A stretch of DNA of 64,000 bases from Diadema antillarum (Eukaryota): positions 1-64,000 of the forward strand of contig NW_027272210.1 of the NCBI RefSeq assembly GCF_040938485.1. Direction: 5' to 3'. The position numbers and the translations under genes were made by a program. How positions within the stretch are numbered: position 1 is the stretch's first letter; each line of letters starts with the position of its first letter. Under the pieces are notes generated by a model. The model was not told the origin of the DNA. It searched no databases and saw only the letters and a program-made list of their open reading frames with translations. Of this stretch, positions 36,401 through 62,719 are shown one piece after another.

Positions 36401-39400
36401 AGGTGGGAAGAGAAAGAGTGGAATCTCTCTCCCCACCTCCCTGCTTTAAACGTAAACATTCCGATCGACCACAAAAAGAAAACATTCCAGGACGTCCAGG
36501 GTGTCAGTTACACGCACCGCAGAAGAACGATAAATCAACTCATACAAGGTCGACCACTTACAGCAGCACTAGGCGTCAAACAATGACTAGTCCATTTGTG
36601 CTCAGTTATTGCACAGTGACCATTAGTTTTACAACTCTCCAACTTTAAACAGGGAAGTAAAAATAAAGTGTAAGAGCGTTCAGATGTTTGAAGTTTGCCT
36701 GTTACAACTACTTATGTATCTTTGAAGTTGGAGTTGAATGATATACATTGATGAACAATTTTGCAATTATTCAACATGTTGATGGTCTACAGGTAGTCAA
36801 ATGTGGCTTGATCGGTATCATAGTGTATAGCCGTATTCACATATTTTCTTAATTTACCTAGGGGATAGGTAATAATTATGATATTGACTGGCCTTTCTTT
36901 CGGGAGGTACCAGATAAATATCGCCCGCACTGAAAACATTGCCCTCGTCTTCGACTCGGGCAATATGCTTTCAGTTTGGGCAATATTTTCTGGTACCTCC
37001 CTCAGGGCCAGTCAATATTATATAATTATTCACAGCTCTACCAAAATTTGACCAGGCATTCTAAAGTAGAAGATGAAAATGTACAATAAGGGCCCAAATT
37101 TTTTAAGATTCCTTAATTTGGGGGTATTGGGGCCCCCTGGGGCCCTCTGGGTGGGGCATGGTGCTCATTTTGATAAATTGAGATCCTGACCCCCTAGGGA
37201 TGCTACTTGCCAAGTTTGACGAAAATCCATTATGAGGTTTTCAGGAAGAAGATGAAAATGTACAATTCAGGCCCCCATTTGGACCTTCCCAACCAACCAC
37301 CCCCCCCCCCCCCACCCCTGCCCCCAAGAGGGGCACCCCTGGATCTCCTATGAACAAACTTGAAACTACAGTCATTAATGTACTCACTCATAGTATTATC
37401 TTAGCTCTATAACTTCTGATTCTACAGAAGATTTTTAAAGATTCCTTCATTTTGGGGGTGTGGGCCCCCTGGGGGCCCCCTGGGTGGGGCATGGTGCCCA
37501 TTTTAACAAATTGAGATCCTAACCCCTTAGGGATGCTACCTGCAAAGTTTGGTGAAAATGGGTCATGGGGTTCTCAAGAAGAATATAAAAATGTACAATT
37601 TAGGCCCAAGTAGGACCCCTCCTCAACCCACCTCCCCTGGGTCCCAAGGGGGGCATCCCTGATTCTGCCATGAACAAATTTGAAACTGCAGTCATTAATG
37701 TACTCACTCATAGTATTAACTTAGCTCTATCACTTCTGGTTCTAGAGAAGAAGATTTTTACAGATTCCTTAATTTTGGGGGGTTTGGGCCCTCTGGGGGC
37801 CCCCTGGGTGAGGCATGGTGCCCATTTTAACAAATTGAGTTCCTAACCCCCTAGGGATGCTACCTGCCAAGTTTGGTGAAAATGGGTCATGGGGTTCTTA
37901 AGAAGAAGATGAAAATTTACAATTTAGGCCCCATTAGAACCCCTCCCCACCCCCTCCCCTGGGTCTCAAGGGGGGCACCCCTGATTCTGCCATGAACAAA
38001 CTTGAAACTACAGTCATCAATATACTAACTCATAGTATTAACTTAGCTCTATCACTTCTGGTTCTAGAGAAGAAGATTTTTACAGATTCCTTAATTTTGG
38101 GGGGTTTGGGCAACCCTGGGGGCCCCCTGGGTGGGGCATGGTGCCCATTTTAACAGTTGAGTTCCTAACCCCCTAGGAATGCTACCTGCCAAGTTTGATG
38201 AAAATCGGTCTTGGGGTTTTCAAGAAGAAGATGAAAATGTAAAAAGTTTACGCACGACGCACGACGCACGACGCACGACGCACGACGCACGACGGACGCC
38301 GGACGAAGGGCGATCGCAATAGCTCACTTGAGCCTTTGGCTCAGGTGAGCTAAAAACTCAATCTGCTAGCATTTCATGTGATGAAATGTTTTATTCATAC
38401 CTGATGTCAAGTCCTCAGTAATATACACTTGAAAGGTGCACATAATATAAACACAGTAGCTCTTCACCAGCTGTTTGACAATCCTGTTTAGAAGCAAAAT
38501 TCAAAACTGAAGAATTGTAATCCTATATGACCTGTCTCACATCTCTAAAAACAACTTGCTGCACTAATAAACAACTCTCATGAAACTGGTATTAAACTAA
38601 CTCTCCCCAAGCTTTGAAATACTCTCATGACTCAGCAAATGACCTCTGACCTGGTATATGCAAATTGCCAAAGCAGTAGCCTGCTGTCCCAGCCACGACG
38701 TGAGAGCCTCGTCCAGCAGACTGCACGTCTCTGATTCGCCCACCAGTCCCTGTTGTGGCTCCACTAAAGGGCGCAACACCTGGCAGCAAAATGGAGCAGA
38801 AAAAAAAAACCCACCATGAAGTTTGTTATTGAAATGGTAATAATAACAAAAAGAGAAGCAGAGAGGTGCAGAAGAGAGGAGGAAAGGAAAAAGAAGAACA
38901 AGAACACGAAAAAGAACAAAAATATAAGGAAGAAAAAAGGAGAAGGAGAAGTAAATGATTAAGAACAAAAGAATAGGTAAGGAGGGAAGGAGACTACAGA
39001 ACATATGAAGAAAATTGATGAGGCAGGAGGAGGGAGATGATGAAAAAGAAGAGGGATAAGAAGTGTCTGCAAATAATGTTTAATAACATTAATAGGATAA
39101 ATTCAAATAATCACGCTGCTATAACAAGACCAGGAATGGAGACACCTTGGCACTGGCAACCTCTGCTGCTTCCACCATCATTAAGGAGGATTTCATAGAG
39201 GTAGCAATATCTCCAGATCATCCCCAAAGGTAGCAATATCTCGAGATCATCCCCAAAGCATGGCAACCTCTGCTGCTTCCACCATCATTAAGGAGGATTT
39301 CATAGAGGTAGCAATATCTCGAGATCATTCCCAAAACATGGTAAGTATAAATGATCATCTTTGCCGAAAAATTTATGTGACAGAGCGGAGTCCAGTTATA

Positions 39401-42400
39401 ACGAAGTCCTCAGGACCGGCAGTTTTCTTTCGTTATATCAAAATTTTGTTATAACCGAACAAATAAACAATAAAAACACATAGAAGGGATAATATTACGG
39501 CCTGAATTTTTACTTCATTGTGACCGGAATTTTATTATAACCGTGTTTGTTATAATTGGAGTGCACTGTACAGCTCACAAGAGTTGCACATCATCGCAAA
39601 AACAACACCAGTGGCAAAACTTTCTTCTAGACCAGTACCACATCTGTTCCAATTAAGATTTATACCTGTGGGGAAGTTATGTGTCTCAGCCGTAAAGATG
39701 ATATGTCGGTCAAGACTCTTCTCCGTCATGGGCGTGGCCGTGGAACCGGGGCTGGCTGGATAGAGGGCCCTCATGGTAAATCCCTTGATGGCACTGCAAC
39801 AACAGTCACATAAAATTATCAAGGTCCTTCTCAGTATCTTCAAGAGAGTGTTTCATCATCTCTTTTCTTTCAGATATTTTCTGGACCTGACTCTACCTTG
39901 AAGAGATGAACAGTCAGATTGCTGTTTATTCCTCTATCCTGAATAGTCCTAAATCAACACATCTTATCATTCTGTCATCAGTCGATAGTGTACATGCAAT
40001 CATAGTTATGATTGAATGTACCAATAGTAAGTCTCATTGTTTTCTAAAATGATTGTTATTCCATTTGTGATTAAATCAATGCAGAAGATGCTGAATAAAT
40101 TTGATTTTGAATTTGCACATGACTTATTTTTGAATAGATGAAACACTTGTTTAAAAAAAAAAAAACACATCTTATAATGCACAATGTTTCTAGGCACTAT
40201 ACTGTAATTCAAAGTGCCATTTGTGCATTATTCACTCCCTGTGGCAGGTGGAGCAGCAGCATATGATTGGTAATTGTATCAATGTGACATTCTCTGAAGG
40301 ATTTCTAGAACTTTGACATGATTAAAACTTAACCCTTTGAAGACTAGTTGCACGCAGTCTTGGGCCAGCGTGTATGGGAATTGCGTATTAAAGCAGAATC
40401 AGCTCGTCCTCAATGGATCAAAAGGGGAGATCCATTTTCTTCACACTAAAATGTTGTGCTTTGGGGGGAAAAGGTCACAGAAACGGTACCTGCTGTTGTC
40501 AGAAAATTTGATGACATTGTTTGGGTTGCTCATCTCTTGGGTCTTCATCACCATCTTGAAGAGTGAGTCTTCCTTCTCCTCACCGTCCACCACCATCCGA
40601 CCCTTGAAGAACCAGTGACGGCTGTGCTCGCTGCAAACCAAAGTAGAAACAAAACTCTTAAATACAACGTAATGACACACAAAAAAAGAGAGCATCATAT
40701 AAACATATCGTCAAAAGGTGCCAACAATATCAACACTATCGTCTTTACATCACAAGGTACCAGTACCAACATGTTGAACTCTTTTCTCGTTTTTGTATTA
40801 AATGCAGGAAGATGAGTTTCTGTTTAAGTCAAGCTTTCAGATATTTCCTCTTACATGACAAAGGTACAGTTGCCAAAGTAAGATGCTTGCAAAAAAATTG
40901 AGCGGAGTTTCTTTAGAATATTAATGCTGATGACATTTTCCAACTATAACTTTCTACCTTCTATATTGGATATTCTTTCAATAACCAGTATGTTTTTTCC
41001 TTCTCTGTAATTTTTCAAATTCTTCTTTTTGTCTTTGCAGTGCAAATCACAATTCCCTACTTGAAAACATTTCTTACTTGCAAGAGAAGGGTGAAATGTT
41101 TGGAACAAACAAAATTCAGTCATATACAACTCAGGATGTAATCAAGTATCACGGTTGTGCGTGAGACTGTGTTTGGATGATACCTGTTTGATTGGGCAAG
41201 GTCAAAGCACTCCACGCTTGTTGGATTTCTCTTGACTTTGTTGACAAACATGTCGGTGTAGTATTCAAGATCCCATTCATCGAAAGCAAGGCCTGCATGG
41301 AAAAAAAAATACAGAACATCATAAACATTCTGCATTCTTTACTTCAAAACAAATGACTCTGCAAACATATAGTTACTGGCACAAGTCACAAAATGTTATA
41401 GATTGTTTTTACTCATCCTTTGAAAGCTACAGCAACTGCCAATCATTATGCAATGAAAACTTTTCACGAGCGAAAATGAAACTTGAGCATATATTGAATG
41501 GTGCTCAATAGTGTAATTGGAAGCTACAATGAGCCCACCCGATGATGTATGCAGGAGGCTTTATTAAGTGTTCAGGTATCTGATCTGGCTGCCTTGTAAG
41601 AGGTTTCTAACTAACCAAGATCTTTGTTAGCTTTCCTCAGAGCTGCTTGTCCCTGCTCCATGATATCCACATCATAGACGTCTTCCGGGTTTACATTGAT
41701 GGCAAAGCTCTTGAGTGGCTCCGAGTAGCGGCATTCTGTCATGCGATCATGGAGGGCAGCTACAATGGCACGCTCGGCATCAGCCAATGCGGCAGAGGCG
41801 TTCACTGCTATGAGGAAGCGCCGCGAGCGCTCGATGCGCGAGATGTTCCCGAGCCCAGCTGACTGGCAGATGGAGACTGCATTAGTTGACCAGGCTGTGG
41901 AGAAGTTTAACCTGCACAATGAACAGAACAGAAGTCAGGCTTGCTTACCATGTTAGATGAATTCAAAGTCTCTTTGTCAAAGCATATCACAAAGAGATGA
42001 GCTTTTTTTTCAGTTGAGTACAAGTAAAGTTCAATATATATCTCATAATGTGAATGCGAAAGAACAGCTGTTTGACAAAGATGTCACGAGATTACACAAG
42101 TCACACATTTGCCTGGACAAATACGAGAATCACACAAAAATGTCTGAAGAATGGCACAGTGTATTATGTTATGGCTTCTATTCTTTCAATTGTGTGTCTC
42201 TGAAGATATCAGTTGAAATGGATCCAATCTCAGAAAGCAATTGTCTATATACTACATAATTAAAAACAGCGAGGACTGAATTTTCTACCTAGGTAATAAT
42301 AATCACCGTGATGTTAGAGGTAAGTATGATCATGTATTGTATTCAGTTGAAAACAAATTTGAAAAATACTGCAAATCTCTTAATGCACAGCTTGATGCAC

Positions 42401-43726
42401 AGCTTTAATTGCAAGTTGAATTCAACTTCAGAACTAAAAGTCAACACAATTGAACAGTCCTCTGAGTATACATGTGGACAGATCATAGGATGCAATTGTA
42501 TGACTGGTTGAGGTGAGACATCAAATTTCACATGAATGGTTTATATGAGAGATCTGCATTACTTGCCTTCATACACCCCACAAACAAAAATTTCCAGAAG
42601 AACTCTTCACAGAAGAACCTTTTTACTTGTACGCTATGTACACATATTCATATCATTCAAAGTCAAACATGCCAACTGCAGTTTTCTTTTTAACAGGCAA
42701 GAACAGCCCTACAGCCAATGAATAAATAGGTAAATAGATAAATACATAATACACAGATAAAATAAAACAAAATACTAATACCATACATACTTTCACATTC
42801 TTGTGAAACAAAGGCACTTCATGTTTCAAGTGCACTGGCAGACACTTTCCTCCTAACTGCCACAACTAAGACACGAAAGCATGGCACCTCACCTAGGTCC
42901 TATCTCGATAAGTAGGGATCCATCCGTCCTTCTTGCATCAAGCACAGACGTAGACGAAATCCTGTCTTCCTGAAAGGGAATCCCGATGATGAAGAGCAGC
43001 TTCTTGACATCTTCAGCTGACAGATCTTTTTGAAAAGCAGACACAAAACAAAACAAATTGAATGGCCCAAAATTCAAATTTACACTCCCACCTCTCACAT
43101 GACTATATTTCTCTAAGAACACCTACAGTAACTTGTATTTTGGTTTTATTTTATCATTTTTCTTTGAAACAGTTATACATTGTTTTTATTCAAACTTTGA
43201 AATTGTTCACCAGCATGTATATGGAATCTGGTAATTTTTTGTTAGACACTCAAGTACCTTTGTACCATGAATGATCAAGACTAATCAAACTCGCCTCCTT
43301 TGCAAGTTTGCTGCTTTGTTGTTGGTAATCATTAACCTTTACATGACAAACAGAAGGGCTTTCAACTTACTGTCACACTTTGAGGAGTTACTGAATTTAT
43401 AGGAAAGGAAGAAAAAAAAGACTAAACCAGAAAAAAAGAGAACAAGAAAAAGATTCAAGGGGGAAAAGAAGAGGAAGAATTAAAACAAACAAACAAACAG
43501 AGATGGAGGAATCATCTACTGTACAGGATGAGAAAGTGAAGAGATAACACCCACAATACTGCATGATTATACACTCACCACCATCATCTACTTGGATGTT
43601 GTAGCATGTCTCTGTTTGAAGCGTCACATCGGCATCCTGTCCCACAATGCCTTTTACCTTGGCTAGTGTTGTCTGATGAGCCCCATCACTCAAAGCTGGG
43701 GTGGTAAAGTAGTGCAGGACAGCCAT
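18167..43726 (-). CDS. PFAS: Phosphoribosylformylglycinamidine synthase (FGAM synthase, PurL-type); 23 coding exons, 1338 aa
   Basis: complement join(43579..43726,42893..43025,41616..41911,41184..41292,40490..40630,39666..39793,38651..38779,35318..35578,34570..34800,33095..33318,32350..32487,31396..31527,30045..30275,28860..29040,27802..27885,26905..27060,26229..26339,25393..25544,24516..24726,23857..24057,23347..23508,20146..20295,18167..18474) = 4017 nt. All junctions GT-AG and phase-compatible. Motifs: [86 protein letters not shown], glutaminase GVCNGCQ, AHGEG, MPHPER. Confidence 0.97.
18669..18886. mobile_element. PIF/Harbinger-type MITE
   Basis: TIR GGCCCGAATTCACGAAGGTGGT(T/C)TAAATTTAAACCATG; 3-bp TSD GTT. 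Confidence 0.75.
19904..20080 (-). mobile_element. Tc1/mariner-type MITE (reverse)
   Basis: TA|CACTGCACTC..GTTATAACG..CTGCCGGTC..GATTG|TA. Confidence 0.6.
20146..20295 (-). CDS. PFAS: PFAS exon 22
   Basis: HNTSERYESRFVTV..LGIWVAHGEG. Confidence 0.95.
21538..22147. mobile_element. Foldback-type DNA element with repeated sub-terminal motifs
   Basis: TIR GCGTGTTTATACAG / CTGTATAAACACGC; internal GCTCATGC and ATGCGAGAGG repeats in both orientations; CpG-rich relative to the host intron. Confidence 0.65.
22335..22919. mobile_element. Kolobok-type non-autonomous element
   Basis: (C)TAA|AGGAAATCCAC ... GTGGATTTCTTCT|TTAA. Confidence 0.55.
22924..23008 (+). mobile_element. 85-bp piggyBac-type MITE
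   Basis: TTAA|CCCATTGAGGA ... TCAACAGG|TTAA; family also at 27977, 30389, 31674. Confidence 0.7.
23347..23508 (-). CDS. PFAS: PFAS exon 21 (glutaminase nucleophile)
   Basis: GWAAAIL..RPDTFSLGVCNGCQLM (not in ORF track). Confidence 0.95.
23857..24057 (-). CDS. PFAS: PFAS exon 20
   Basis: [39 protein letters not shown]. Confidence 0.95.
24516..24726 (-). CDS. PFAS: PFAS exon 19
   Basis: LRDVWEATSFQLERLQTNPTCVEEE; phase-1 donor G|GTGAGT. Confidence 0.92.
25393..25544 (-). CDS. PFAS: PFAS exon 18
   Basis: LEHLFAEELGLVLEV. Confidence 0.92.
26229..26339 (-). CDS. PFAS: PFAS exon 17
   Basis: [29 protein letters not shown] (not in ORF track). Confidence 0.93.
26905..27060 (-). CDS. PFAS: PFAS exon 16
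   Basis: GTLLYVDL..RLGGSALGQCYSQLG. Confidence 0.93.
27565..27645. repeat. (GTT)n/(GGT)n microsatellite
   Basis: Visible trinucleotide run. Confidence 0.9.
27802..27885 (-). CDS. PFAS: PFAS exon 15
   Basis: GALVISTYVGCPDITATVTPDLK (not in ORF track). Confidence 0.93.
27977..28061 (+). mobile_element. 85-bp piggyBac-type MITE
   Basis: Same family; ..TCCTCAACAGG|TTAA. Confidence 0.65.
28860..29040 (-). CDS. PFAS: PFAS exon 14
   Basis: [30 protein letters not shown]. Confidence 0.95.
29783..29931. mobile_element. PIF/Harbinger-type MITE
   Basis: TIR GGCCCCATTTCATAAAAA; 3-bp TSD CTG. Confidence 0.7.
30045..30275 (-). CDS. PFAS: PFAS exon 13
   Basis: VDRSVTGLVAQQQCVGPLHTPLADVAV..GEQPIKGL. 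Confidence 0.95.
30389..30473 (-). mobile_element. 85-bp piggyBac-type MITE (reverse)
   Basis: Same family, reverse orientation. Confidence 0.6.
30739..31041. mobile_element. hAT-like MITE
   Basis: TIR CAGAGACTCCAAC / GTTGGAGTCTCTG; flanking direct repeat GCTATC; internal CTCCCG repeats. Confidence 0.6.
31396..31527 (-). CDS. PFAS: PFAS exon 12
   Basis: VFKLDR..RVLRLPSVASKRYLTNK. Confidence 0.95.
31674..31758 (-). mobile_element. 85-bp piggyBac-type MITE (reverse)
   Basis: CCCGTTGAAGA ... TCCTCAACGGG|TTAA. Confidence 0.65.
32350..32487 (-). CDS. PFAS: PFAS exon 11
   Basis: IRLEDE..PVDLDLEWVLGSMPRK. Confidence 0.92.
33095..33318 (-). CDS. PFAS: PFAS exon 10
   Basis: GNVLKEICEP..LEIWGAEYQESNA..RERCPV. 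Confidence 0.95.
33530..34098. mobile_element. Kolobok-type non-autonomous DNA transposon
   Basis: TTAA target-site duplications on both sides; long TIRs starting AGGACAAGTTCACCTTCATAAACATAAGGATTGAGA (first 36 nt perfectly inverted). Confidence 0.85.
34570..34800 (-). CDS. PFAS: PFAS exon 9
   Basis: [33 protein letters not shown]. Confidence 0.95.
35318..35578 (-). CDS. PFAS: PFAS exon 8
   Basis: GYQLPWED..ASNGASDYGNKFGEP..KPIMFSGGIG. Confidence 0.95.
36205..36390 (+). mobile_element. Tc1/mariner-type MITE nested in HINE-like element
   Basis: TA|CAGTGGACTCC..GTTATAAC ... GTTATAATAGGAGTGCACTG|TA. Confidence 0.75.
36872..37028. repeat. ~155-bp imperfect palindrome (hairpin element) nested in HINE-like element
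   Basis: Arms ATATTGACTGGCC..GGGAGGTACCAGA..CTGAAA.CATTGCCC mirror each other around CTCGTCTTCGACTCG. Confidence 0.7.
38651..38779 (-). CDS. PFAS: PFAS exon 7
   Basis: [43 protein letters not shown] (not in ORF track). Confidence 0.95.
39154..39337. repeat. Local tandem duplication (107-bp period with 29-bp sub-repeat) in PFAS intron 6
   Basis: TGGCAACCTCTGCTGCTTCCACCATCATTAAGGAGG at 39154 and 39261; GGTAGCAATATCTC.AGATCAT three times. Confidence 0.85.
39381..39568 (+). mobile_element. Tc1/mariner-type MITE
   Basis: Same family as 36205-36390; ends GGAGTGCACTG|TA. Confidence 0.65.
39666..39793 (-). CDS. PFAS: PFAS exon 6
   Basis: [19 protein letters not shown]. Confidence 0.95.
40490..40630 (-). 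CDS. PFAS: PFAS exon 5
   Basis: [21 protein letters not shown]. Confidence 0.95.
41184..41292 (-). CDS. PFAS: PFAS exon 4
   Basis: LAFDEWDLEYY..RNPTSVECFDLAQSN. Confidence 0.95.
41616..41911 (-). CDS. PFAS: PFAS exon 3
   Basis: LNFSTAWSTNAVSIC..HDRMTEC..ANKDLG. Confidence 0.95.
42893..43025 (-). CDS. PFAS: PFAS exon 2
   Basis: DLSAEDVKKLLF..LLIEIGPR; AAG acceptor, donor AG|GTGAGG. Confidence 0.88.
43579..43726 (-). CDS. PFAS: PFAS coding exon 1
   Basis: tttcag|GA ATG GCT; MAVLHYFTTP..ETCYNIQ; donor G|GTGAGT. Confidence 0.88.
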
Positions 43727-49264: not shown

Positions 49265-51017
49265 TTACACTCTCAGTCTAGATTCATAAAGTTCGTCATA
49301 GTATTTCATAACTGCATCCGTGCATCTGATGACGTCAGGAGTCACATGGTCCCGAGAAGGCATGGGACCCGGAGGCCCAAATGTCCCGGTCGTTAATGCC
49401 CTGTCGTAGAAACATTTGATGCTTTCGATTAAATCCGCTCCGGCCACATTCCATTTACCGGTCAACGACATGGACGCGTTCCACTTTAACAATGATTCGT
49501 CGTAAGGTAGCCCGATAGCTTCGCAGTATTTCGGCAACAGTTCGGCCGGATTCGACAACAGGTCGTCAGCATCGATCACGATCGGGTCACGGTCGAGGTT
49601 CTCGCGAACGTACTTCCAGAGTTCGTAGAGCTCCCCGAAAGCCAGCTTGGAGGGATCCATGAATATATAGTCCCGTCCTACATCTACAGTTTTCTCGTCC
49701 AACGATTCACCGCAGATCATGCCCAGCTCACTAAACCGTGTGTAGGTCGCCTTGCGTAGTGAGTTGAACACTCGGAGAGGATGTCTGATGAGAAATGTGT
49801 GCTTGTACCCTTTGGGCAGAAATTCAAAGTTACAGCTTTTCATCGCGGTTGCCATATCCTTGACGAAAACATGTATGCCTGTAGAACGCTCAAGGAAACG
49901 CTGGATGGATGCGTATCTGTAAAGAAAATTTAAGTTCACACGTTGATCACGATGTGGCGCCCTCAGACTTCTAAGAACTAAGGTCAATTTTTAAAGTGTT
50001 TATGAAGGTTAAAATATTATAGAAATTGTGTTTGTCATGAAAATTTTGTCTGTTAATGTTTTGGGTATTTTTCGAACGGCCAAAAGTGTGTGTGTGTGTG
50101 GGGGGTGGGGGGGGGATCTGCCGCAATCCAATCCCCCCACCCGTTCCGTGGCCCCTGTATGCCAGTGCATGGAACATGAATTGAAAGTAACGCAGTTGAA
50201 AAACCAGTGATTTAACTTTTTGTCTGTTTTTGAGGGGGTTGTTGTTTGTTCATGCCACATAACATCTATAATCACATGCATCATATAAGTATAATCATTA
50301 AGCAAAATCAAACCAGGCCATTTGTGATCCCTCTCCCACCCCCATCTCCCCCCCCCCCCCCGCCTGCACCCGATTTTCCCTTTGTGAGTAAATCTTTGAA
50401 AAACGGTTATTTTAGCCGTTTTGTCACAAAGATATGTACATGATATTCTTGAAAAATAAAATCAGTTGTAGAAATAGATTGAAATTAAAATTGGAGTTAT
50501 CTGTGAATCATCATCCAAACCGCATATAATGTTAAGATCTACTAAGATTTGATACCGTCTGATTAGTAACTGATTGCTTTTCAGGCATGTCATATAGCTT
50601 ATCCGAAGACGATGTCGCATAAGTCAGGATTGGGGCACGTGGGTTGGGTGTGTATTAAGCTACTTACGACAAGTGTTGAGGCTTGAGGGCATTCCATCGC
50701 CTGACTGCCTGTAAATAGTCCGCTGCTTGCTGATAGAGGTCTTCGTTTCCTTCGTATTCCTTCGGGATCGTTAGGTTGCGGTCCCTGGCAATCACGGTTT
50801 CCGTGCCTAGGCAGTAGAAGTAAGGTTCGAACCACACCTCGATGCCGTCGATGGCGGAAAAACACTTCGTTACCGCACTAGAGATGGTGCGCGGAACGCA
50901 CCACATGATGGTACGGCTCCGTGCCTCGGGAGGAGTTCCACCGCCGGGGTCGGACCCCGTATTTGCAGTTAATGTAGCCACACATGACGGCGGTATTCCT
51001 TTATTGGAGGACTCCAT
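49265..51017 (-). CDS. Sulfotransferase-like P-loop-fold protein, copy A (Sulfotransfer_5 / 'BCAT-like protein N-terminal domain' family), 333 aa
   Basis: complement join(50668..51017,49265..49916); donor TC|GTAAGT, acceptor ttacag|A. Motifs IMWCVPRTISSAVTKC (5'-PSB-like), VWFEP, VFVKDMA, HTFLIRHPLRVFNS (3'-PB-like), PIVIDADDLLSNP..LPKYCEAIGLPYDESLLKW. Family assignment is from motif recall. Confidence 0.85.
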
Positions 51018-52029
51018 ATTGAAATTTAGATTATCTTTGTATTTCGAAAAAGTCTGAAAACATTGCCAATGCGTCTGCAGTCACAAGACACAGCGTTATT
51101 GTCATGAGATTAGGTCCTATGCGTTACACGCATCACGCGGAGGAATCGTTGCAGAACTTACTCAATTAGTATTGCTTGCCGTGACTGTCTGTATTGACGA
51201 TTGCGAGTTACATTGAAATCATTATCAGTATAAACATAATCAATGAGAGAGGTCTTTGTCACTCAAGTGCACCTGAGAGTGAACCTTAGCACCGCTCACA
51301 GCGATTAAAGAGCAATTTCCACACCATGAACATTTGGGTTCTGATAAAAAAAAAGTTGTCGCTGCCTCTACTTTAAAGACCTGTGAAAATGGTTTAAGAC
51401 TTATGGAGTAGCTATATGGGTTGAGTCTTTTACATTTTATGATTTTCCACTTTAGAAAGTTTTCGACGACTGCTGAAACTTTATCTTCCAGAAAAATGAA
51501 TAGTTTGTCACATTATATTTCAAGGAGATACACTATGACATATTGTAAACTGATGTAAGTGCATTCTGTGACTTAAACATTTATGTTAAGGTTTCTGTAT
51601 GCACGAGATTTCTTCTTTTTTTCTACTGTTGTTGATCAGGAGATGTATATTACGAATGTAAAATGCGGAAACTCAAGAAACAAAACGAAATGAAGTGAAA
51701 ATGATACACTGTTTTCAAAATCATTAGACTGACAGCATATAGGAGATCATCTCTGTTTCAAAGCAGAATAAACAACCTTTATGCATGCGGCTCTAGTTTT
51801 TCAGGTGCCAACTTTCCTTTAACATCTAACATAGCATGCTTAACTGATTATTTATGAAAATATCACATTTGAAAGCAATTCCTTGAATTCGCATTACATT
51901 GAATATCAAGAAAGTAAATGGTTACGGAGTCGTCATGTTTATCAAGGTCGACTGTCATCCACTATAATTGATATTTTTCTTCACCGCTTTTCATTTTTTC
52001 TCTTTCATTTATGTCTTACCTCAATGTCA

Positions 52030-52483
52030 AAATGTCCACCAAATTTGATTTTAATTGCTTCAAAATTGTGGAAGCAGTTCACTCCACAAGATTCTCAAGA
52101 AAATATACAATTACCATGGCAACGCCTTGTCGGGTACAAATACAAAGTGTGTCTTGCATAACTACACCTATAGATCATTATACATACCAAATTTGAAAAA
52201 TAAATTGCTTAAATACTGTGGAAGTATAGTTCGCTCTACGAGGTTTTTGGGAAAATTGTGGTTACCATGCCAACACTTTCTCCGACAAACACACAAAAAA
52301 GACATGTCTTGCACATCTACACCTCAATGTCATCATGTACTCTAAGTTTCATCTGAGTTGCTTCAAAACTGTAGAAGGACTTAGCGACGCAAGATTTGCA
52401 ACGGACAGCCCGACAGACCGACCGACCGCCCGACCGACTGCACGCTGATTCCTATATACCCTTCGTGTATGCGGGGATATAAT
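52030..52483 (+). mobile_element. HINE-like element (degenerate, 5' end uncertain)
   Basis: Three ~155-bp degenerate units, (GACC)n microsatellite, terminal CCTATATACCC..GGGGATATAAT hairpin. Confidence 0.5.
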
Positions 52484-53399
52484 GAAAAAGTAACAGAATT
52501 TTATAAATTCACAAGCTTCCACAAAAGAGTGACTTTGGTGACAAACACACATGGAAAATTGGAATAGTTGATGATGTCATAGTCTTCCATTGACCAGCGC
52601 ATCAATTTCACCAGTTTCCCTTTTTGACATGAAATCTATTAAAATGATTTCTGTTGTCTCGTCAAATTGTAGTAGTTTTGAACTAACCCATCATCGGTGG
52701 CTTCTTTAGGTGTAAAGGGGTTGCAGTCAATAAATCGTGACCTGAAAACAAGATTTAGATATAGTTTACGCACGGATGACATTGTTTCTTCTAATTGAAC
52801 AGCGTGTGTGTGCTTTTGCATGCGATCAATGCCACTGTTCGATGAAAACGTGTAAAACTTTGAAATCTCATAGTTTCATTGCGTTAGTGCCGAATGGGAT
52901 GAAACTTTTTTCATTGTGTTTGTCTGCTGATACTTTATTCATGAAAGTCAGCTTCAAATTGGCGTTAATTCGACTTAAAGAGTTCGAGTAAATCAGACAA
53001 ATAAAATGAAACAACTTTGATTAAAATCGGACATGATGTTAGAAAGTTATAGACTCTAATTTGGTACGAGTGTTTTAACCCAATGGTCATAATCAGAAGC
53101 AACCAGTGTTTTTCTTGGTTCCAAGCAGAAAATAGTCAAGACAGAAACAAAACAAAAAAAGTCATCTCTCTTAATCAATCAAACTTCAAAGTGACTGATC
53201 AAGCAATACTGCATAAAGTGCGAATAACCGTACTTATTATCACATAGTCCATGCAATATTATGTTATTTTTTTCAACATTAATATATTCTGTGGTAACTG
53301 CTTTTACGGAATTGACAAGCGAGTTCTATCTTGTTCCTTTGTTACTCTATAGCTAGAGAAAGTTTTACGCATGGTGATACAGAAGCAAATAGTATTATA

Positions 53400-55177
53400 C
53401 TACACTTTTAGTCTTGATTGATAAAGTTCGTCGTAGTATTTCATGACTGTATCCGTGCATCTGATGACGTCAGGAGTCACATGATCCCGAGAAGGCATGG
53501 GACCCGGAGGCGCAAATATCCCAGTCGTTAATGCCCTGCCGTAGAAATCCTTGATGCTCCCCAGCAAATCCTCTCCGGCGACATTCCATTTCTCGGTCAA
53601 CGCCATGGACGCGTCCCACTTTAACAAGGATTCGTCGTAAGGTAGCCCGATCGCTTCGCAGTACTTCGGCAACAGTTCGGCCGGATTCGACAACAGGTCG
53701 TCGGCATCGATCACGATCGGGTCACTGTCGAGATTCTCGCGAACGTACTTCCAGAGTTCGTAGAGCTCACCGAAAGCCAGCTGGGAGGGATCCATGAAGA
53801 TATAGTCCCGTCCTACATCAAAAGTTTTCTCTTCTGAAGATTCACCGCGGAGCATTCCCATCTCACCAAACGTTGTGTAGGTCGCCTTTCGGAGCGAGGT
53901 GAACACTCGGAGAGGGTGTCTTATCAGAAATGTGTGCTTGTATCCTTTTGGCAGAAATTCAAAGTTACAGCTTTTCATACCGGTCCCCATATCCTTGACG
54001 AAAACATGCTTGCCAGTAGAATGCTCGAGGAAACTCTTGATAGACGCGTATCTGCGAAGAAAATTTCAGGTAAAACAACATGATTATTCGTTAAGAAATA
54101 ATGAAGATTTTTTTTCAAGCGCTTAGGCCTATAACAGTTACATGGAAAATGTGTAAATAATCTAAATTTCGTCTCTCGAGAAGACGTTCAAGAAAGATAA
54201 ACAAAGTAACAAGTTTAATAGATTGATATCAATGGGCTGTGTGACTCGTAGGTGTCAGTCTCGTGAAGTGCACCCATTTTCTTATACCTTAAGTTCAATT
54301 TTACTGAAACTGCGACAATTCTGCTCATCTGATTTTTATTCTGTTCATGGCAGTTAATTTTACAATATTGAGGAAAATCCTCTTTCCTCTCGAACAGATG
54401 TAAAGGAGCTGAGGCCTAGATAGTAGGTATGGTCAATCCACGTTGCGGAGTGACAACTGCATCAGTTTGATTTGCTGTTGTTTCGGGGTGTCTTCTTTTT
54501 TATTCTTTTTATTTTTACTCCGCTTATTATTATTATTATTATTGAAATTTCGGGAGACGTTCTAATGATAAAACTGGGAGGAAAATGAATATCTTTGTAA
54601 ATACATAAATACATAAATACATAAATAAGTAGAACGTTTGAAATTTTTTTCCCTTTATGAATTTCGTGCATCATCTTGCAATCATCATTAAGACAACCAC
54701 TTGTCAAGGTCAATTATGATACCACCTGATCAATTGATTGTTTTTTCATGTCACCATAAAGGAAGACGGGGTATAGCAGTGAGAATGGAGTCTGTGTATT
54801 GGGTGTATCATTCTTCTGAGGCACACTTACGACAAGTGTTGAGGCTTGAGGGCGTTGCATCTCCAGAGACCTCGAAGATAGTCCGCTGCCTGCTGGAAGA
54901 GGTTTTCGTTCCCTTCGTATTCCTTCGGGATCGTTAGGTTGAGGTCGCTGGCACTCACTGTCTCTGTAGCCAGGCAGTAGAAGTAAGGTTCGAACCACAC
55001 CTCGATTCCGTCGATGGCGGAAAAACACTTCGTCACGGCACTGGAGATGGTGCGCGGAACGCACCACATGATGGTACGGCTCTGATCGGAAGGAGTTCCG
55101 CCGAGACCGGGTCCTATACCAGCTGCAGTTGGTGTAGTCACATGTGACGGCAATACTCTTTTGTCAGAGGACTCCAT
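53400..55177 (-). CDS. Sulfotransferase-like P-loop-fold protein, copy B, 332 aa
   Basis: complement join(54831..55177,53400..54051); same phase-2 intron as copy A; TAG stop; intact frame. Confidence 0.85.
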
Positions 55178-56677
55178 ATTGAAATGTAGAATATCTTTTA
55201 AATCAGCTCTCGTTGCTCTATAAAAAAAACCCCCAAAACAACCCATATATATTGCGAATGCGTGCGATCACAAGACACAACGTATCGCTTTTTAGGAATT
55301 ATTGCGACATTTACACTCGTCAAGGTAGAGGACCGAATCATGACAGAGGTTCTTGAGTTATTGCTTGCTCAATGATAACGGTATAGACCCTATGTAGACA
55401 AGCCCGTCTTGTAATGAAATCATGTTTGCACTTGTCAATGACAGAGATGTTTTTTTACAAGTGCACCTCAGAGTGAACTTTACCACAGCTTATAACAATT
55501 CCACGTCTTAAGCATTATGGCTATGAGAGAGAGTAAAATCAATAGCGATCACTGCCCTTCTAGCGCAAATTTAATATTGCTTGCACTTTGAACAGTGTAA
55601 GCTTGATCAGTCGCTTTGAGTGTTGGTAGACCGGTTTGTTTTGTTTTGCTTTTGTTTCTGTTTGTTTTGTTTTGTTGGGGTGTTTTTTTTTTTTTTTTTT
55701 TTTGCTGCTGCTTTGAAAAAAAAAGAGAGAAATATCGTCATTTTCCATTCTGTAACTACCTCGACAATCCCCTATACAGTCAAAGTTGATGTCCCTGTCA
55801 ATGTCAGTGTCCATGTGTATGTCCCTGTCTTTGTGTCTGTTTTTGACTGTCTATATCTCTACCTTTGCCCTTGTCCTTACGTCGGTTTTGTATTTTTTAT
55901 TTGCTATGATACTGCATATTATGGAATATCAAAATTATTTGTATTGAGGGCACACTCGTCGCAAGTTTTTGCGCTTCTAGAGATGTGCCGCAGTATTTTC
56001 AAATTGATCGCATGTTACTTATACTTATATGTATCTATATTTGCAGGAAATAAATGTCATTGAACCATGAATCATGAACCATGAGTATTCTGTGAAAAAA
56101 AGTGATACTCAAAATTTGCACAACTTTTTTATTTCCTGACCGATTATATTCGACTGATTCGCTCTATCTGTATTCATAATGGTGAAAGTGTCAGTGAGAG
56201 ACTATGGCGTTAACATCATCCCGTTTTCCATACACATTGCGACTACTAGGCCTACACAGTTTTGTGTGGCAATGCGTGAAACTTTTGAATTTCTGTAACT
56301 TTTTTATTTTTTATGTAATTCTGATGCAAAAGTCTGCCATATTTCTCTGTTCGCCGGCTTCTCTCTAACTTTTAAAGTCCTATTCCATGCCACTGTGAAG
56401 TTGACTTTCATTAAAAGAAGATTTAATTGTGATCTATACTCTTTTCATCAAAGGCAAATTGTGGAATTGCGCTTTAAAGTAAACTTGAACGCTGTATGTG
56501 TGGAATCGCATTTTCAAAAGCTGGTTCCCAAGTCCAAGCCTTGATCACGACCAATGTTTACTCTATTAAAAAAAAAAGAAAAACAGTTCTCCCTTTCCTG
56601 TTCTGTCTCTCTCTCTGTCTCTCGATCAGCCTGATACATGCTTGAAGAAAGAAAGGAAGAAAGAGTTACAGAGGGAG

Positions 56678-56842
56678 NNNNNNNNNNNNNNNNNNNNNNN
56701 NNNNNNNNNNNNNNNNNNNNNNNNNNNNNNNNNNNNNNNNNNNNNNNNNNNNNNNNNNNNNNNNNNNNNNNNNNNNNNNNNNNNNNNNNNNNNNNNNNNN
56801 NNNNNNNNNNNNNNNNNNNNNNNNNNNNNNNNNNNNNNNNNN
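56678..56842. other. Assembly gap / masked run (165 N)
   Basis: N run. Confidence 0.99.
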
Positions 56843-56951
56843 TAGATGAAGATATAATAGATGTTAATAATTCCTCCCGCTAACTCACTCTTCCTCTTCA
56901 GCCACTTTTTCACTGAACAATATTACATGTATTTTACATGTATCAAACTGA

Positions 56952-56954
<3 letters not shown>

Positions 56955-56999
<45 letters not shown>

Positions 57000-57001
57000 T
57001 G
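56955..57001. repeat. (GT)n microsatellite
   Basis: Visible run. Confidence 0.95.
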
Positions 57002-57245
57002 TTTTTGCGAGGTGAGACGAAGTTTAACTGTCTGAAATATGTTTTTCCCCACTAAATTAATAACAAACTGTAATTGCACGAATCATAATTGGACTAGGCA
57101 AGGACTGGAGAGATGTGCATCAAAGCTTTGAGACGTTTGTCAGTAGGCCTATATTAATTAATCATATAGGTAATGCAAGCATGACACGATCAATCACATT
57201 TCCTTTCAAGTCGCTACGCTGCTTTTCATATTTTTGTCACATCAG

Positions 57246-57384
57246 GGGGGCATTTCATGAAGCGTTTTGTCAGATATTTCGTCTGACAAAATGTTAAAAG
57301 CTACGGAAATCCTTGCACCTGATTGGCTGAGAGCAAAATTTGTCCGACAAGTTGTCGGACAAAAGTGCATCATGAAATGCCCCC
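57246..57384. mobile_element. PIF/Harbinger-type MITE
   Basis: TIR GGGGGCATTTCATGA; 3-bp TSD CAG; decayed sibling at 2555-2698. Confidence 0.72.
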
Positions 57385-58378
57385 CAGAACTCGAAAAAGC
57401 CAAATGACATTAAAAACTGCATGCATTAAAATTACATCGACATTGTCGAATACTCGAAGCAAATGCTTCTGCTAAATTGTTCCATAATGATATGAATATA
57501 ATATAGTTTAAACTTTGATAATATTTTGGTGCAGATTTCATATTGAACTTTCACATAAATAGATATTTGTTATACAAATATTTGCAACAGAGCCAACAAC
57601 GACAAGACGTTATCATTAGATTGTATAGGGAAACAAGTTCGTGGTTATCAGCATAGTTCGCTGGAACGGGGCTTCCTGTCACGTGACACAGTGTTTTCGA
57701 ACTTTGAATGGCGTCTGGTTCAGGAAGAAGAGGACAAACCAACAGCACATTAATAGGGATCTGATCGAAAAGTGGAAATACAATACACAACGATGTCTGA
57801 ATAGCTACGGTACAGCTATGAGAGATATTACAGTTTAATAACGAAAGTAAGCTTCGTGAAACATTGTTTAGTTCAGTTCAGTTCATTTTTATCTTTGATT
57901 TTCATTGTCAATACAGCACTAAAAGTATAAAAATAACAAAACCTTGGAATAATCATATGAACAATACACGCATCAACATACGTTGTATGCAGAATCATAT
58001 CGTACGATGTATGACATAGTAATAATGTAGTACGTTGTATACTCATATACTAAGGCAGCCAATATTGTCTGTCGGATAACAAACAAAACAAAACAAACCG
58101 AAAAATATAAAGCTATAATGTGTTGGTGCGGCCATGCGTATGCGTGTTATTAATTTTCCCTAACGATAATCATTCACTCAATCATTGTAGGATTTGATCA
58201 TTAGTTTTGATGACTAAGATTTCGGCCTAAATGCATGAGTATCACCAGATTTCTCTTTATCGTTTTCCCTCTCAGGGGGTTCTCCAAATTACATGTAGCC
58301 CTCAATAGGCCGGATGCATAAAAGCTAGCAATTAGATAAGATTGAGAACATTATCTATCTATTACAGAACATGAAATC

Positions 58379-58678
58379 AAAGCCCACGAGTTCGACATTG
58401 AAAACAGGTCCATGAGTCATACAGCTCACGAGTTATACAGCCCACGAGTTCGACACTAGGTAAATAAAGCCCAGTTCGACACTAGGTAAAAACAGCCCAC
58501 GAGTTCGATAGATACAACACGGGACTTAATGTGTCGGTCTCGTGGGCCTTGTTAGCTTATTGTCGAACTCATGGGCTGTATGACTCGTGAGCTGTATAAC
58601 TCATGGGCTGTATGACTTGTGAGCTGTATGACTCTCGCGCTGTATGACTCGTGGGTGTCGGTCTCGTGACGTGCACCC
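58379..58678. repeat. Foldback element made of ~16-17-bp repeats
   Basis: Left (A)CAGCCCACGAGTT units are inverted relative to right CTC(G/A)TGGGCTGTATGA units; ends GTGCACCC; a fragment also lies at ~54227-54275. Confidence 0.6.
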
Positions 58679-58827
58679 ACATTAGATGTTAGGATATGGC
58701 TTTAAAATGATCGAATTTGTTACTTTCACTCAATTCAGAGTATAATTATAATTCTTTTGATGATTCTAGGATTATAAAAAAAATGAAGGTGTTTTAACCA
58801 TATCCCCGATTGGAGCACTTTGCGAGA

Positions 58828-58828
<1 letters not shown>

Positions 58829-58874
<46 letters not shown>
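58829..58874. repeat. (GT)n microsatellite
   Basis: Visible run. Confidence 0.95.
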
Positions 58875-58878
<4 letters not shown>

Positions 58879-59071
58879 TTTATTGCAGTGCGTGGTACAC
58901 GAACAAATTAAAACAAGAATGATTTGCTGGGAGCAAAGTAATATGAGTATACTGTTGACTAGAGATCTCCCTCTATCGACAAGGTGTCAACAGCAATGAA
59001 TGTTGAAGCATCTACAGCTCATAAACAAGATCATGATTTTTAGACGAGTGTTTTTGGCAGTCTATTCTTAA

Positions 59072-59443
59072 AGGTATTGTTTACCATTGGGAGCAGTGAT
59101 TTTAAAAAAAATATTCGAGTTATCATATTTTGATGCATATGTGTCTGTCATGTAATTTGTACATGTATCACAAAATATTCTACCAAATATAAATTTTGCA
59201 ATGAAGCCTAAAAAATAAGGAGATATCACTATTTTTCTGATTAAACCATAACTGTAGGCGGTTTAGCCTAGAAACAATTTTATTATAACTATCGTTTACA
59301 TTTTGTATATCTAACAATACTTAACATTGATTGTACTGATTAACATTATTACATTGGTGTCTCCATCCCTATAACTCACATTTTAGAACTATTTTGAAGC
59401 ACTAAAGCTGGGTTTTCGAGTCTGCAAATGGTAAATAATGCCT
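59072..59443. mobile_element. Kolobok-type non-autonomous element
   Basis: TTAA|AGGTATTGTTTACCATT ... AATGGTAAATAATGCCT|TTAA. Confidence 0.7.
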
Positions 59444-60025
59444 TTAAAACTATTTACAGAAGTTGCTGAGATGACGCATTCAGGGAGACTATCCTATTGA
59501 CAATCTCTATTTCCGTAGAAATGCATCCTTTTGGAAAAGTGAAGCTGAGACTTTTCAAGCAAATGTTGTTTTTTTTTGTGTGTGTATGTTTTATTCACAG
59601 AATGAAAGATAACAATCATAGTATAAGCAACGACAAAAAATAAATGAATAAGAAAAAACAGCATATTAAGATACAAAAAATATAAATACTGCAGCATAAA
59701 TTACAAGAGCAAATGTTTTCATAAGGTCCATATGCTGTTTCCAAATAGCCAAAACAACATCATCAACAACAACAAACAGCAAAATAAAAACAAACAAGTC
59801 CCCTCTCTTAATCAACCCAAATTCAAAGTGACTGATGAAGCTAATTCCACTCGATGTGCGAATATTTACGATTATAATCCGTCCTATATTATATTGTCTT
59901 ATCAACAGCAGTGTATTCCGTGGTCACTTATCTTACGGAATTGACAGACTTTTTTTTTTCTTTTCTTTTTTGCATCTATTTGTTACTTTAACAGAAAAAA
60001 CGAAAACAGAAGCAAATAGTGTACA

Positions 60026-61591
60026 TTACACTTTTAGTCTTGATTGATAAAGTTCGTCGTAGTATTTCATGACTGTATCCGTGCATCTGATGACGTCAGG
60101 AGTCACATGATCCCGAGAAGGCATGGGACCCGGAGGCGCAAATATCCCGGTCGTTAATGCCCTGTCGTAGAAACCTTTGATGCTTCCGATCAAATCCTCT
60201 CCGGCAACATTCCATTTATCAGTCAACGCCATGGATGCGTCCCACTTCAACAATGATTCGTCGTAAGGTAGCCCGATAGCTTCGCAGTACTTCGGCAACA
60301 GTTCGGCTGGATTCGACAACAGGTCGTCGGCATCGACCACGATCGGGTTACTGTCGAGATTCTCGCGAACATACTTCCAGAGTTCGTAGAGCTCACCGAA
60401 AGCCAGCTGGAAGGGATCCATGAATGGATAGTCCCGCCCTACATCAAAAGTGTTCTCTTCTGGAGATTCACCGCGGAGCACGCCCAGCTCACTAAGCGTT
60501 GTGTGGGTCGCCTTGCGTAGTGACGTGAACACTCGGAGAGGGTGTCTGATGAGGAATGTGTGCTTGTATCCTTTGGGCAGAAATTCAAAATTACAGCTTT
60601 TCATCGCGGTACCCATATCCTTCACGAAAACATGCTTGCCTGTAGAACGCTCAAGGAAACGCTGGATGGACGCGTATCTGCAAGGAAGATTTCAGGTGAA
60701 ACGACATGATGTTATTTTAGTGCCTTTTGGGTCTATTCTGGTCGATTCATGCTATTTATGAATTATCATTCCTTTTTAAAGGGCATTCTACCGTCTTGAT
60801 CACATCGAAATATCTGACTTTACTCTGTTCATATAAAAACAAACTTTCTTTTCATTTATTTTCCATAGCCAAATGATACAAAATTGTTACAAACTTGACG
60901 ATGGAAATGAGTTTCTTTTTCCTCCCTGTAAAGGAGGTGATACGTGGCTAGTAGGTGTGGTCAATTGATGCTGGAGTCACGTTTTATGTACCTGTTTGTT
61001 TTGTTTCTGTTTTGGGCTTTCTTTCTTCTTCTTTTTTGTCCACTCAATAAAACTGAGGGGAAGATAAATATAGCTTTAAATGATTAATTGCGTGCATCGT
61101 CTGATGGCAATCATGACCAAGACCACTATACGTGTCAACGTCAACCGTCTGATGAATTGATTGTTTTTCACATTATCATAGAGGACGGGGTACATGTATA
61201 ACAGCGGAAATGGAGCCATGTTGATTGGGTGCATGTATACTTACGACAAGTGTTGAGGCTTGAGGGCGTTGCATCTCCATACGCCCCGAAGATGGTCCGC
61301 TGCCTGCTGGAAGAATTTTTCGTTCCCTTCGTATTCCTTCGGGATCGTTAGGTTGAGGTCGCTGGCACTCACTGTCTCCGTAGCCAGGCAGTAGAAGTAA
61401 GGTTCGAACCACACCTCGATGCCGTCGATGGCGGAAAGACACTTCGTCACGGCACTGGAAATGGTGCGCGGCACGCACCACATGATGGTACGGCTCCGTG
61501 CCTCGGGAGGAGTTCCACTGGGGTCAGACGCCATACCAGCAGTTGGTGTAGCTACATGTGACGGAAATACCCTATTGTCAAAGGACTCCAT
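60026..61591 (-). CDS. Sulfotransferase-like P-loop-fold protein, copy C, 332 aa
   Basis: complement join(61245..61591,60026..60677); same phase-2 intron; TAA stop; intact frame. Confidence 0.85.
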
Positions 61592-62248: not shown

Positions 62249-62719
62249 TTTAATCAACTCTCGTTGTCTTTATTTCAGACAAGCTGGAAATGCATGTACT
62301 GCGAATGCGTCGATCTGCGATCACAAGACACAACGTAATCGCTATAAGAATTACTGTGATATTTACACACGCCAAGAGGAGTAATCATAACGGAAGTTAC
62401 TCAGTTATTGCATGCTTGCCTTTGACTTTGCTGACTATGTAGACAATTGCATCTTGTAATGAAATAATATCTGCATGAACTTGTGAATGACCGAGGTCTC
62501 TGTTGTCAAGCGCACCTCATATAGTGGACTTTGTCACCGCTCATAGTAGTTCGACACCATGAACAGGTTGGCTCTGATAGACAGTATAAGTCAATCAAAA
62601 AATGATACGATTGTCGCTGCCCTATACTTCTAATTAAAGGGGTGTTCTAGCGCAAATTCAATAGTGTTTGCACTTTGAACAGTCTGAGCTTGATCAGTCA
62701 TTTTGACCATTGGTAGATA

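Follow-up and report, generated by a model that had tools for sequence, protein, structure and literature searches.

A conserved tandem trio of predicted Sulfotransfer_5 (PF19798) sulfotransferases in the sea urchin Diadema antillarum

What do three closely similar genes standing in tandem on a contig of the sea urchin Diadema antillarum encode, and where do they come from? The stretch analysed here, the window, is the first 64 kb of contig JBFRCO010001322.1 (GCA_040938485.1), and window and record coordinates coincide. A first-pass annotation of this DNA had taken the genes, here called g1, g2 and g3, for stand-alone sulfotransferase-like genes that are lineage-specific and possibly horizontally acquired, and it had questioned whether their products use 3'-phosphoadenosine 5'-phosphosulfate (PAPS). 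We found that the trio are new members of a known, uncharacterised family, PF19798 (Sulfotransfer_5), and that they belong, as a small branch, to an expansion in echinoderms that is large and vertically inherited and lies within an old gene family of animals. On balance we consider it rather probable that g1-g3 are functional paralogues whose products are soluble, probably cytosolic sulfotransferases that depend on PAPS. New in this analysis are a link of the family to bacterial operons, the one-to-one-to-one conservation of the trio in Diadema setosum and a corrected start for g2.

Based on the list of open reading frames (ORFs), the splice-site sequences and explicit splicing, all three genes lie co-oriented on the minus strand and have two exons each, with products of 333, 332 and 332 aa. 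Exon 1 of g1 (50668..51017, 350 nt, ATG at 51017) ends after the second base of the Ser117 codon and encodes the disordered tail, the 5'-PSB (5'-phosphosulfate-binding) loop VPRTISS with Arg43, and Glu64. It is followed by a phase-2 intron of 751 nt (49917..50667, GTAAGT...TTACAG) and by exon 2 (49265..49916, stop codon included), which encodes Lys136, the 3'-phosphate-binding (3'-PB) motif R161-H-P-x5-S169 and DADDLL and completes the spliced product of 333 aa. Exon 1 of g2 (54831..55177) runs from a conserved ATG at 55177 (MESSDK) and is separated by an intron of 779 nt (54052-54830) from exon 2 (53400..54051, stop included; product 332 aa). The corresponding features of g3 are exon 1 at 61245..61591 with its ATG at 61591, an intron of 567 nt at 60678-61244, and exon 2 at 60026..60677, again with the stop included and a product of 332 aa. 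Each intron has the form GTAAGT...CAG and lies in phase 2, where it splits a Ser codon after the second base in the context '...QHLS/YASI...' (the slash marking the intron), and none of the three frames is interrupted between ATG and stop. The earlier description of three intact, co-oriented two-exon genes with a single common phase-2 intron was thereby borne out, and so was that of a near-invariant core, as the motifs quoted for it (including VWFEPYFYCL and the DADDLL region) are present and unchanged across g1, g2 and g3. The g1 product is a letter-for-letter match to the NCBI 'uncharacterized protein [Diadema antillarum]' (P0001). A tblastn search with six family members as queries gave these three copies only in the window.

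The start of g2 needed correction. Its NCBI model comprises 355 aa and starts at an upstream in-frame ATG at 55246 (MGCFGG...; window 55178-55246, minus strand). On a second D. antillarum contig, JBFRCO010000093.1, this ATG is out of frame, as a homopolymer run differs in length, and there is no ATG at this place in D. setosum, so that the conserved g2 product is the one of 332 aa. A compensated frameshift in the g2 tail was also considered and was ruled out, because the nucleotide alignment shows two 3-nt indels and substitutions.

Membership of PF19798 is clear. The g1 protein (P0001) scored 52.5 bits against this Pfam family, for which the gathering cut-off is 23.2, and the exon-2 translations of g1, g2 and g3 scored 44.6, 35.0 and 36.8 bits. 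The trio protein gave no Pfam match to PF00685, the classical SULT family, at E up to 0.1, and no NCBIfam family matched the sea-urchin, coral or bacterial members. The family-wide residues of PF19798, namely W-x-x-P-R-x-x-S-[ST], a Glu at +21, a Lys, H-x-F-L-I-R-x-P-x5-S and D-x-D-D-L-L, are present in g1-g3 and in their D. setosum orthologues. In two alignments (A1 and A2, the latter with bacterial members) each of them is either invariant or found in at least 90% of the sequences; among the 73 echinoderm-centred sequences and the 26 distant animal and bacterial sequences that were aligned, R, S, E, K, R, P and S show no or almost no variation. Some relatives indeed carry the misleading 'branched-chain aminotransferase-like' (BCAT-like) label in their names, as the first-pass annotation had remarked.

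The predicted structure agrees with this assignment. An AlphaFold2 model built on the 73-sequence alignment was confident, with a predicted local distance difference test score (pLDDT) of 91.2 and a predicted template modelling score (pTM) of 0.88, and residues 1-30 alone were disordered. Exhaustive structural comparison with VIA-align gave PAPS-dependent sulfotransferases at all of ranks 1-22 (Z 9.2-13.9). The top matches were the olefin-synthase sulfotransferase (ST; Z 13.9, 228 aligned residues, root-mean-square deviation 3.8), the tick and human TPSTs (Z 12.8-13.6) and the mycobacterial Stf9 (Z 11.6). Foldseek returned the same families, with the CurM ST (4gbm) as top match. The sulfotransferase fold, a five-stranded parallel sheet with a strand-loop-helix 5'-PSB motif, is attested for the model by its top 22 matches. 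Nucleotide kinases ranked below all sulfotransferases in the VIA-align comparison, with Z of 8.5 or less, and a kinase reading was ruled out, as the proteins have no Walker A motif GxxxxGK[ST] and kinases came behind every sulfotransferase. The description of stand-alone Sulfotransfer_5 proteins of sulfotransferase fold is supported by the Pfam and structural matches.

The family profile matched the CurM ST (4gbm) with E 1.1e-14 and the olefin-synthase ST (4gox) with E 1.3e-9, and in the alignment of the profile with the CurM ST the functional motifs correspond one by one. VPRTISS (P-R43-T-I-S46-S47) falls onto SPRSGST, Glu64 pairs with the Glu 21 residues past the loop Arg, Lys136 pairs with a Lys, and I-R161-H-P-x5-S169 (IRHPLRVFNS) falls onto V-R-H-P-x5-S (VRHPYSVIES). 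The CurM ST residues concerned would be Arg39, Glu60 and Lys133, which agrees with the 4gbm chain numbering at an offset of 3; McCarthy et al. reportedly described their catalytic roles in 2012. Both the 5'-PSB and the 3'-PB motif are thus present in the trio, with the loop Gly replaced by Ile. The 5'-PSB-loop Arg (R43), a Glu 21 residues later (E64) and a Lys on the next-but-one strand (K136) place the proteins in the TPST/CurM-type subclass, and the Arg-to-Glu spacing of 21 is also that of TPST. The TPST triad in the human enzyme consists of Arg78, Glu99 and Lys158, and mutation of these residues lowers activity (PMC10951654).

These correspondences bear on the doubt about PAPS that had been raised earlier because the loop reads PRTISS and differs from the canonical PKSGTT. 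Family-wide the loop is P-R-[STC]-[VIL]-S-[TS], a loop of TPST/CurM type into which PRTISS fits. As PRTISS is the normal loop of the family, it is no sign of lost cofactor use, and the triad and the 3'-phosphate motif are intact. The doubt is weakened in this respect, with the caveat of the missing loop Gly. By homology to CurM ST and TPST, a mechanism can be proposed in which the strand-loop-helix V-P-R43-T-I-S46-S47 would bind the 5'-phosphosulfate of PAPS, whereas R161 and S169 of the FLIRHPLRVFNS segment would bind the 3'-phosphate. Glu64, 21 residues past Arg43, would deprotonate the acceptor hydroxyl, and stabilisation of the sulfuryl group during transfer and of PAP as the leaving group would fall to Arg43 and Lys136. 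The acceptor, probably a small molecule, would sit under two helical 'cap' segments at about residues 65-116 and 168-209. No N-terminal hydrophobic segment, signal peptide or membrane anchor was evident in the spliced products, the tail being disordered, and the enzymes are probably soluble and cytosolic.

The trio can be compared with several groups of known sulfotransferases. The CurM and olefin-synthase STs, cyanobacterial polyketide synthase (PKS) 'activating' ST domains, are the sole solved structures reachable by sequence. They share a P-R-S-x-S-T loop, the Glu at +21, the Lys, R-H-P-x5-S and a segment around D-L-[LV]-x-x-P. However, these domains act within PKS modules on a beta-hydroxyacyl chain bound to an acyl carrier protein, whereas the sea-urchin proteins are stand-alone animal proteins outside any PKS context, with the loop Gly changed to Ile, two echinoid-specific helical insertions and an identity of about 13-16%. 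TPST1/2 and the tick TPST (5wri, 3ap3, 8w5z) resemble the trio in fold, at the Z-scores given above, and in the Arg/Glu(+21)/Lys arrangement. The likeness is one of fold and catalytic residues only, as no sequence match to TPST chains in the PDB was obtained at E up to 10. TPSTs are membrane-anchored and sulfate tyrosines of peptides and proteins, and for the tick enzyme a soluble form was obtained by taking away the membrane-binding region and the stem region (PMC10951654); the trio proteins, in contrast, have neither a membrane anchor nor a signal sequence. The classical cytosolic SULTs (PF00685) are, as is predicted for the trio, soluble and PAPS-using and often expanded in tandem as small-molecule conjugation families, and their fold class reached Z of about 9-11. 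Classical SULTs have the classical loop, a catalytic His and a C-terminal motif. The trio differs from them in having no PF00685 match, in its loop PRTISS and in the aligned base, which is a Glu. The plant 'BCAT-like' fusions and the bacterial operon genes of PF19798 share the Pfam family and the invariant residues with the trio. The echinoderm proteins differ from these in having no aminotransferase domain or such a neighbour, and their identity to the bacterial members is 22-33%.

Several observations weigh against a PAPS-dependent sulfotransferase with an ordinary acceptor. The TM-scores to solved sulfotransferases in Foldseek were just 0.35-0.47. Across all lineages, also in bacteria, the canonical Gly of the 5'-PSB loop is Ile, Val or Leu. 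No characterised member of PF19798, from an animal or any other organism, was found in the literature searched, which for animals agrees with the first-pass annotation. Moreover, the relatives in bacteria and plants show a tie to enzymes of aminotransferase or racemase type, and the chemistry of the family may be other than simple O-sulfation of a xenobiotic-like acceptor.

This tie was followed in 80 bacterial loci encoding relatives, 35 from Pseudomonadota and 45 from Actinomycetota. A class IV aminotransferase gene abuts the PF19798 gene in six of the 80 (L018:2057-3741, L077:1988-3717, L073:2084-3723, L051, L082 and L029); in five both genes share a strand, and the stop of one often overlaps the start of the other, whereas in L029 the two are divergent. 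An Asp/Glu-racemase-superfamily ('Amdase') gene abuts on the same strand in 17 of the 80 loci (L012:2144-3741, L039:2142-3723, L047:2093-3732 and 14 further). Such neighbours of either type were found in 23/35 Pseudomonadota loci and in 0/45 Actinomycetota loci. In plants, a protein fuses a D-amino acid aminotransferase-like (D-AAT-like) domain with Sulfotransfer_5 (PMC13725701), as the first-pass annotation had it for an aminotransferase-type domain. The bacterial operons mirror this plant fusion, which suggests that the ancestral acceptor or pathway was amino-acid-like. No aminotransferase neighbour was found for the echinoderm and brachiopod genes inspected: PFAS adjoins the array described here, another family member stands next to the Patiria gene, unrelated genes flank that of Strongylocentrotus purpuratus and an IspD-domain gene that of Lingula. 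As no aminotransferase- or racemase-type partner is nearby, the echinoderm acceptors may have diverged. Several marine bacterial metagenome-assembled genomes carry two or three tandem PF19798 genes (L016, L047, L030, L060 and other loci of Gammaproteobacteria and Alphaproteobacteria), so that tandem duplication in this family is not confined to animals.

An alternative that we hold to be unlikely, though it deserves attention, is that the PAPS scaffold was kept but no stable sulfate ester is formed on a small molecule. The proteins could then carry out an activating sulfation, in which the sulfate serves as leaving group for elimination or replacement as in the CurM ST, or an N- or C-sulfonation of an amino-acid-derived metabolite, or they could bind the nucleotide in a non-catalytic role. 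The activating STs CurM ST and olefin-synthase ST being the closest structure-bearing sequence relatives speaks for such a chemistry, as do the neighbours in 23 of the 35 Pseudomonadota homologues, the plant fusion to a D-AAT-like domain and the family-wide absence of the loop Gly. However, in echinoderms the genes stand alone with no aminotransferase gene beside them, the conserved catalytic Glu and Lys argue against a non-catalytic role, and varied acceptors account better than a single housekeeping step for the dozens of diverging copies in each genome. Given the aminotransferase operons, the racemase-type operons and the plant fusion, one may speculate further that PF19798 is a branch ancestrally coupled to amino-acid alpha-carbon enzymes, in which an amino-acid-derived metabolite was sulfated or activated, and that marine invertebrates kept it while echinoderms expanded it to dozens of genes, the trio included, for lineage-specific sulfated metabolites by a chemistry new to animals; we put this forward as a doubtful proposal only.

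With regard to origin, the idea of a lineage-specific system was not supported. Among the named matches, PF19798 relatives occur in all five echinoderm classes (Diadema, Strongylocentrotus and Lytechinus; Patiria and Asterias; Amphiura; Antedon and Anneissia; Apostichopus and Holothuria). Beyond echinoderms, the named matches include the hemichordate Ptychodera, the coral Acropora, the brachiopod Lingula, the annelids Capitella and Dimorphilus, the nemertean Lineus and the flatworm Macrostomum. The ESM Atlas added echinoderm, cnidarian and Mucoromycota clusters. Among the matches listed the family is thus one of invertebrate animals, fungi and bacteria, to which the literature adds the plant fusion; no name of a vertebrate, an arthropod or a nematode was seen among them. 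The family is large in echinoderms: D. antillarum has at least 20 clusters at 90% identity, and Strongylocentrotus, Lytechinus and Amphiura also have many members.

A transfer from bacteria or fungi into echinoderms, followed by lineage-specific expansion, draws on the more than 6900 bacterial proteins returned by one search, many of them from marine Gammaproteobacteria and Alphaproteobacteria, and on the lack of vertebrate, arthropod and nematode names just mentioned. The bacterial relatives are, however, just 22-33% identical, and the breadth of the animals named above, within and beyond the five echinoderm classes, is hard to reconcile with it. A maximum-likelihood tree of 102 sequences, rooted on bacteria and with no fungi or plants included, recovered Lophotrochozoa (97*), echinoderms (92), asteroids with ophiuroids (81) and holothuroids with echinoids (99*). 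The crinoid sequences branched first among the echinoderms, not as one clade, and heavy expansions were seen within lineages. The gene tree mirrors the species tree; a phylogeny had been suggested in the first-pass annotation, with a vertical pattern as the outcome that would speak against transfer, and this is the pattern that was obtained. Additionally, Diadema and S. purpuratus have the intron at the identical codon and in the identical phase, and at least 4 introns at other positions were found in the gene of Lingula. The members in Patiria miniata are intronless and also tandem (L085:6001-6909 and 10285-11187), which implies for the phase-2 intron of echinoids either a gain in that group or a loss in asteroids. 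A transfer at the echinoderm level is thus largely refuted, and we regard it as extremely improbable. A transfer may still have taken place much earlier, at the base of the animals or before it, a depth at which the omission of fungi and plants limits the tree. The trio is accordingly best read as part of the vertically inherited echinoderm expansion.

Within the genus Diadema the array is conserved. On chromosome OZ188196.1 of D. setosum the three genes are found again, with order and orientation unchanged and products of 332, 332 and 333 aa, and a codon tree gave strong support for 1:1:1 orthology. Between orthologues dS was 0.16-0.21 and dN/dS 0.22-0.33 (0.11-0.28 in the folded part); between paralogues dS was 0.25-0.36 and the folded-part dN/dS 0.18-0.27. 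It follows from this orthology and from these values that the duplications predate the split of D. antillarum and D. setosum and that all copies have been under purifying selection since. The array would accordingly stem from tandem duplication before that split. The N-terminal part of about 33 aa evolves faster (dN/dS 0.6-0.9) and is predicted to be disordered (pLDDT < 50), and the hypervariable N-terminus of about 30 aa noted earlier is thus a fast-evolving disordered tail.

It might be argued that one or more copies are decaying or unexpressed duplicates with frames still open, as the tail of D. antillarum g2 differs strongly even from that of the orthologue in D. setosum, with a tail dN of 0.48. 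However, all six genes in the two species have intact frames, canonical splice sites and every motif residue, folded-part dN/dS between orthologues is 0.11-0.28 at dS of about 0.16-0.2, and AATAAA or ATTAAA lies 430-525 nt past each stop codon of g1-g3. Decay or silence of a copy is therefore very unlikely, and the copies are better regarded as functional paralogues.

The differences among these paralogues are not evenly spread. Variable sites per residue amounted to 0.35 in segment 65-116 and 0.43 in segment 168-209, in comparison to 0.08-0.16 in the catalytic core. Nine of the 15 changes in the folded part (34-333) that are paralogue-specific and conserved between orthologues fall within these two segments, and several of them are gains or losses of Arg that set g1 apart from g2 and g3. 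Both segments are insertions with respect to the asteroid, coral, hemichordate, brachiopod and flatworm members and are echinoid-specific. We infer that the two insertions may cap the acceptor site. As the cap segments hold most of the paralogue differences, each of the three enzymes probably prefers acceptors of its own.

Sulfated small molecules abound in echinoderms, the enzymes that make them are largely unassigned, and PF19798 is a large family in these animals. The trio, conserved 1:1:1 across two Diadema species and differing mostly in the putative acceptor-binding cap, offers a compact and tractable set for de-orphaning the family, and the link to bacterial operons and the plant fusion gives a first testable hint at the ancestral substrate class.

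The second contig, JBFRCO010000093.1 (1400587-1422288), is collinear with window positions 39265-61017, which take in the array and the PFAS gene next to it; nucleotide identity is 85-99%, and the g2 coding sequence is identical between the two contigs. Most likely this contig is the other, uncollapsed haplotype, and genome-wide copy counts from the D. antillarum assembly are therefore inflated. An assembly gap of 165 N (56678..56842) lies in the intergenic region between g2 and g3, 1.4 kb upstream of the g2 start and 3.2 kb downstream of the g3 stop, and touches no exon or intron of the trio. Its effect is limited to an uncertain g2-g3 spacing. The adjacency of g3 and g2 is supported independently, because the gene order in D. 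setosum matches and the second contig carries counterparts of all three genes, including the near-identical counterpart of g3 (P0004). (CA)n/(TG)n microsatellites at 56960-57000 and 58825-58870 in the same intergenic region appear as 'CVCVCV' or 'HTHTHT' runs in the ORF translations.

Downstream of g1 lies the 5' part of a 1338-aa gene for PFAS (FGAR amidotransferase, purine synthesis; 39265..43726, minus strand), which is functionally unrelated to the trio and also adjoins the array on the second contig. In D. setosum the 10 kb that follow the array contain no called gene, though the flanking DNA is collinear. Upstream of g2, on the minus strand, an element at 55247..55630 shows about 67% identity to 51064-51346 upstream of g1 and to 62294-62717 upstream of g3. 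This shared element of 300-400 nt abuts the start codons of g1 and g2 and lies about 700 nt further off in g3; it may be an ancestral promoter or 5' untranslated region (5'UTR), to which g3 may have added an insertion or an intron within the 5'UTR.

Two candidates for expression or function of relatives were rejected. A Logan contig encoding P0012 had been considered as a relative's transcript, but its homology begins exactly at the exon-2 boundary, which marks it as genomic DNA with an ORF running into the intron. SpSult, the 'sult' gene of sea-urchin pigment cells, is of SULT1 type and belongs to a family other than that of the trio, as its published quantitative PCR probe translates to the SULT1 signature GDWKNHFTVAQ. 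Two sea-cucumber proteomics papers list a 'BCAT-like protein 1', and this lead, which is by name alone, hints that relatives are made as protein.

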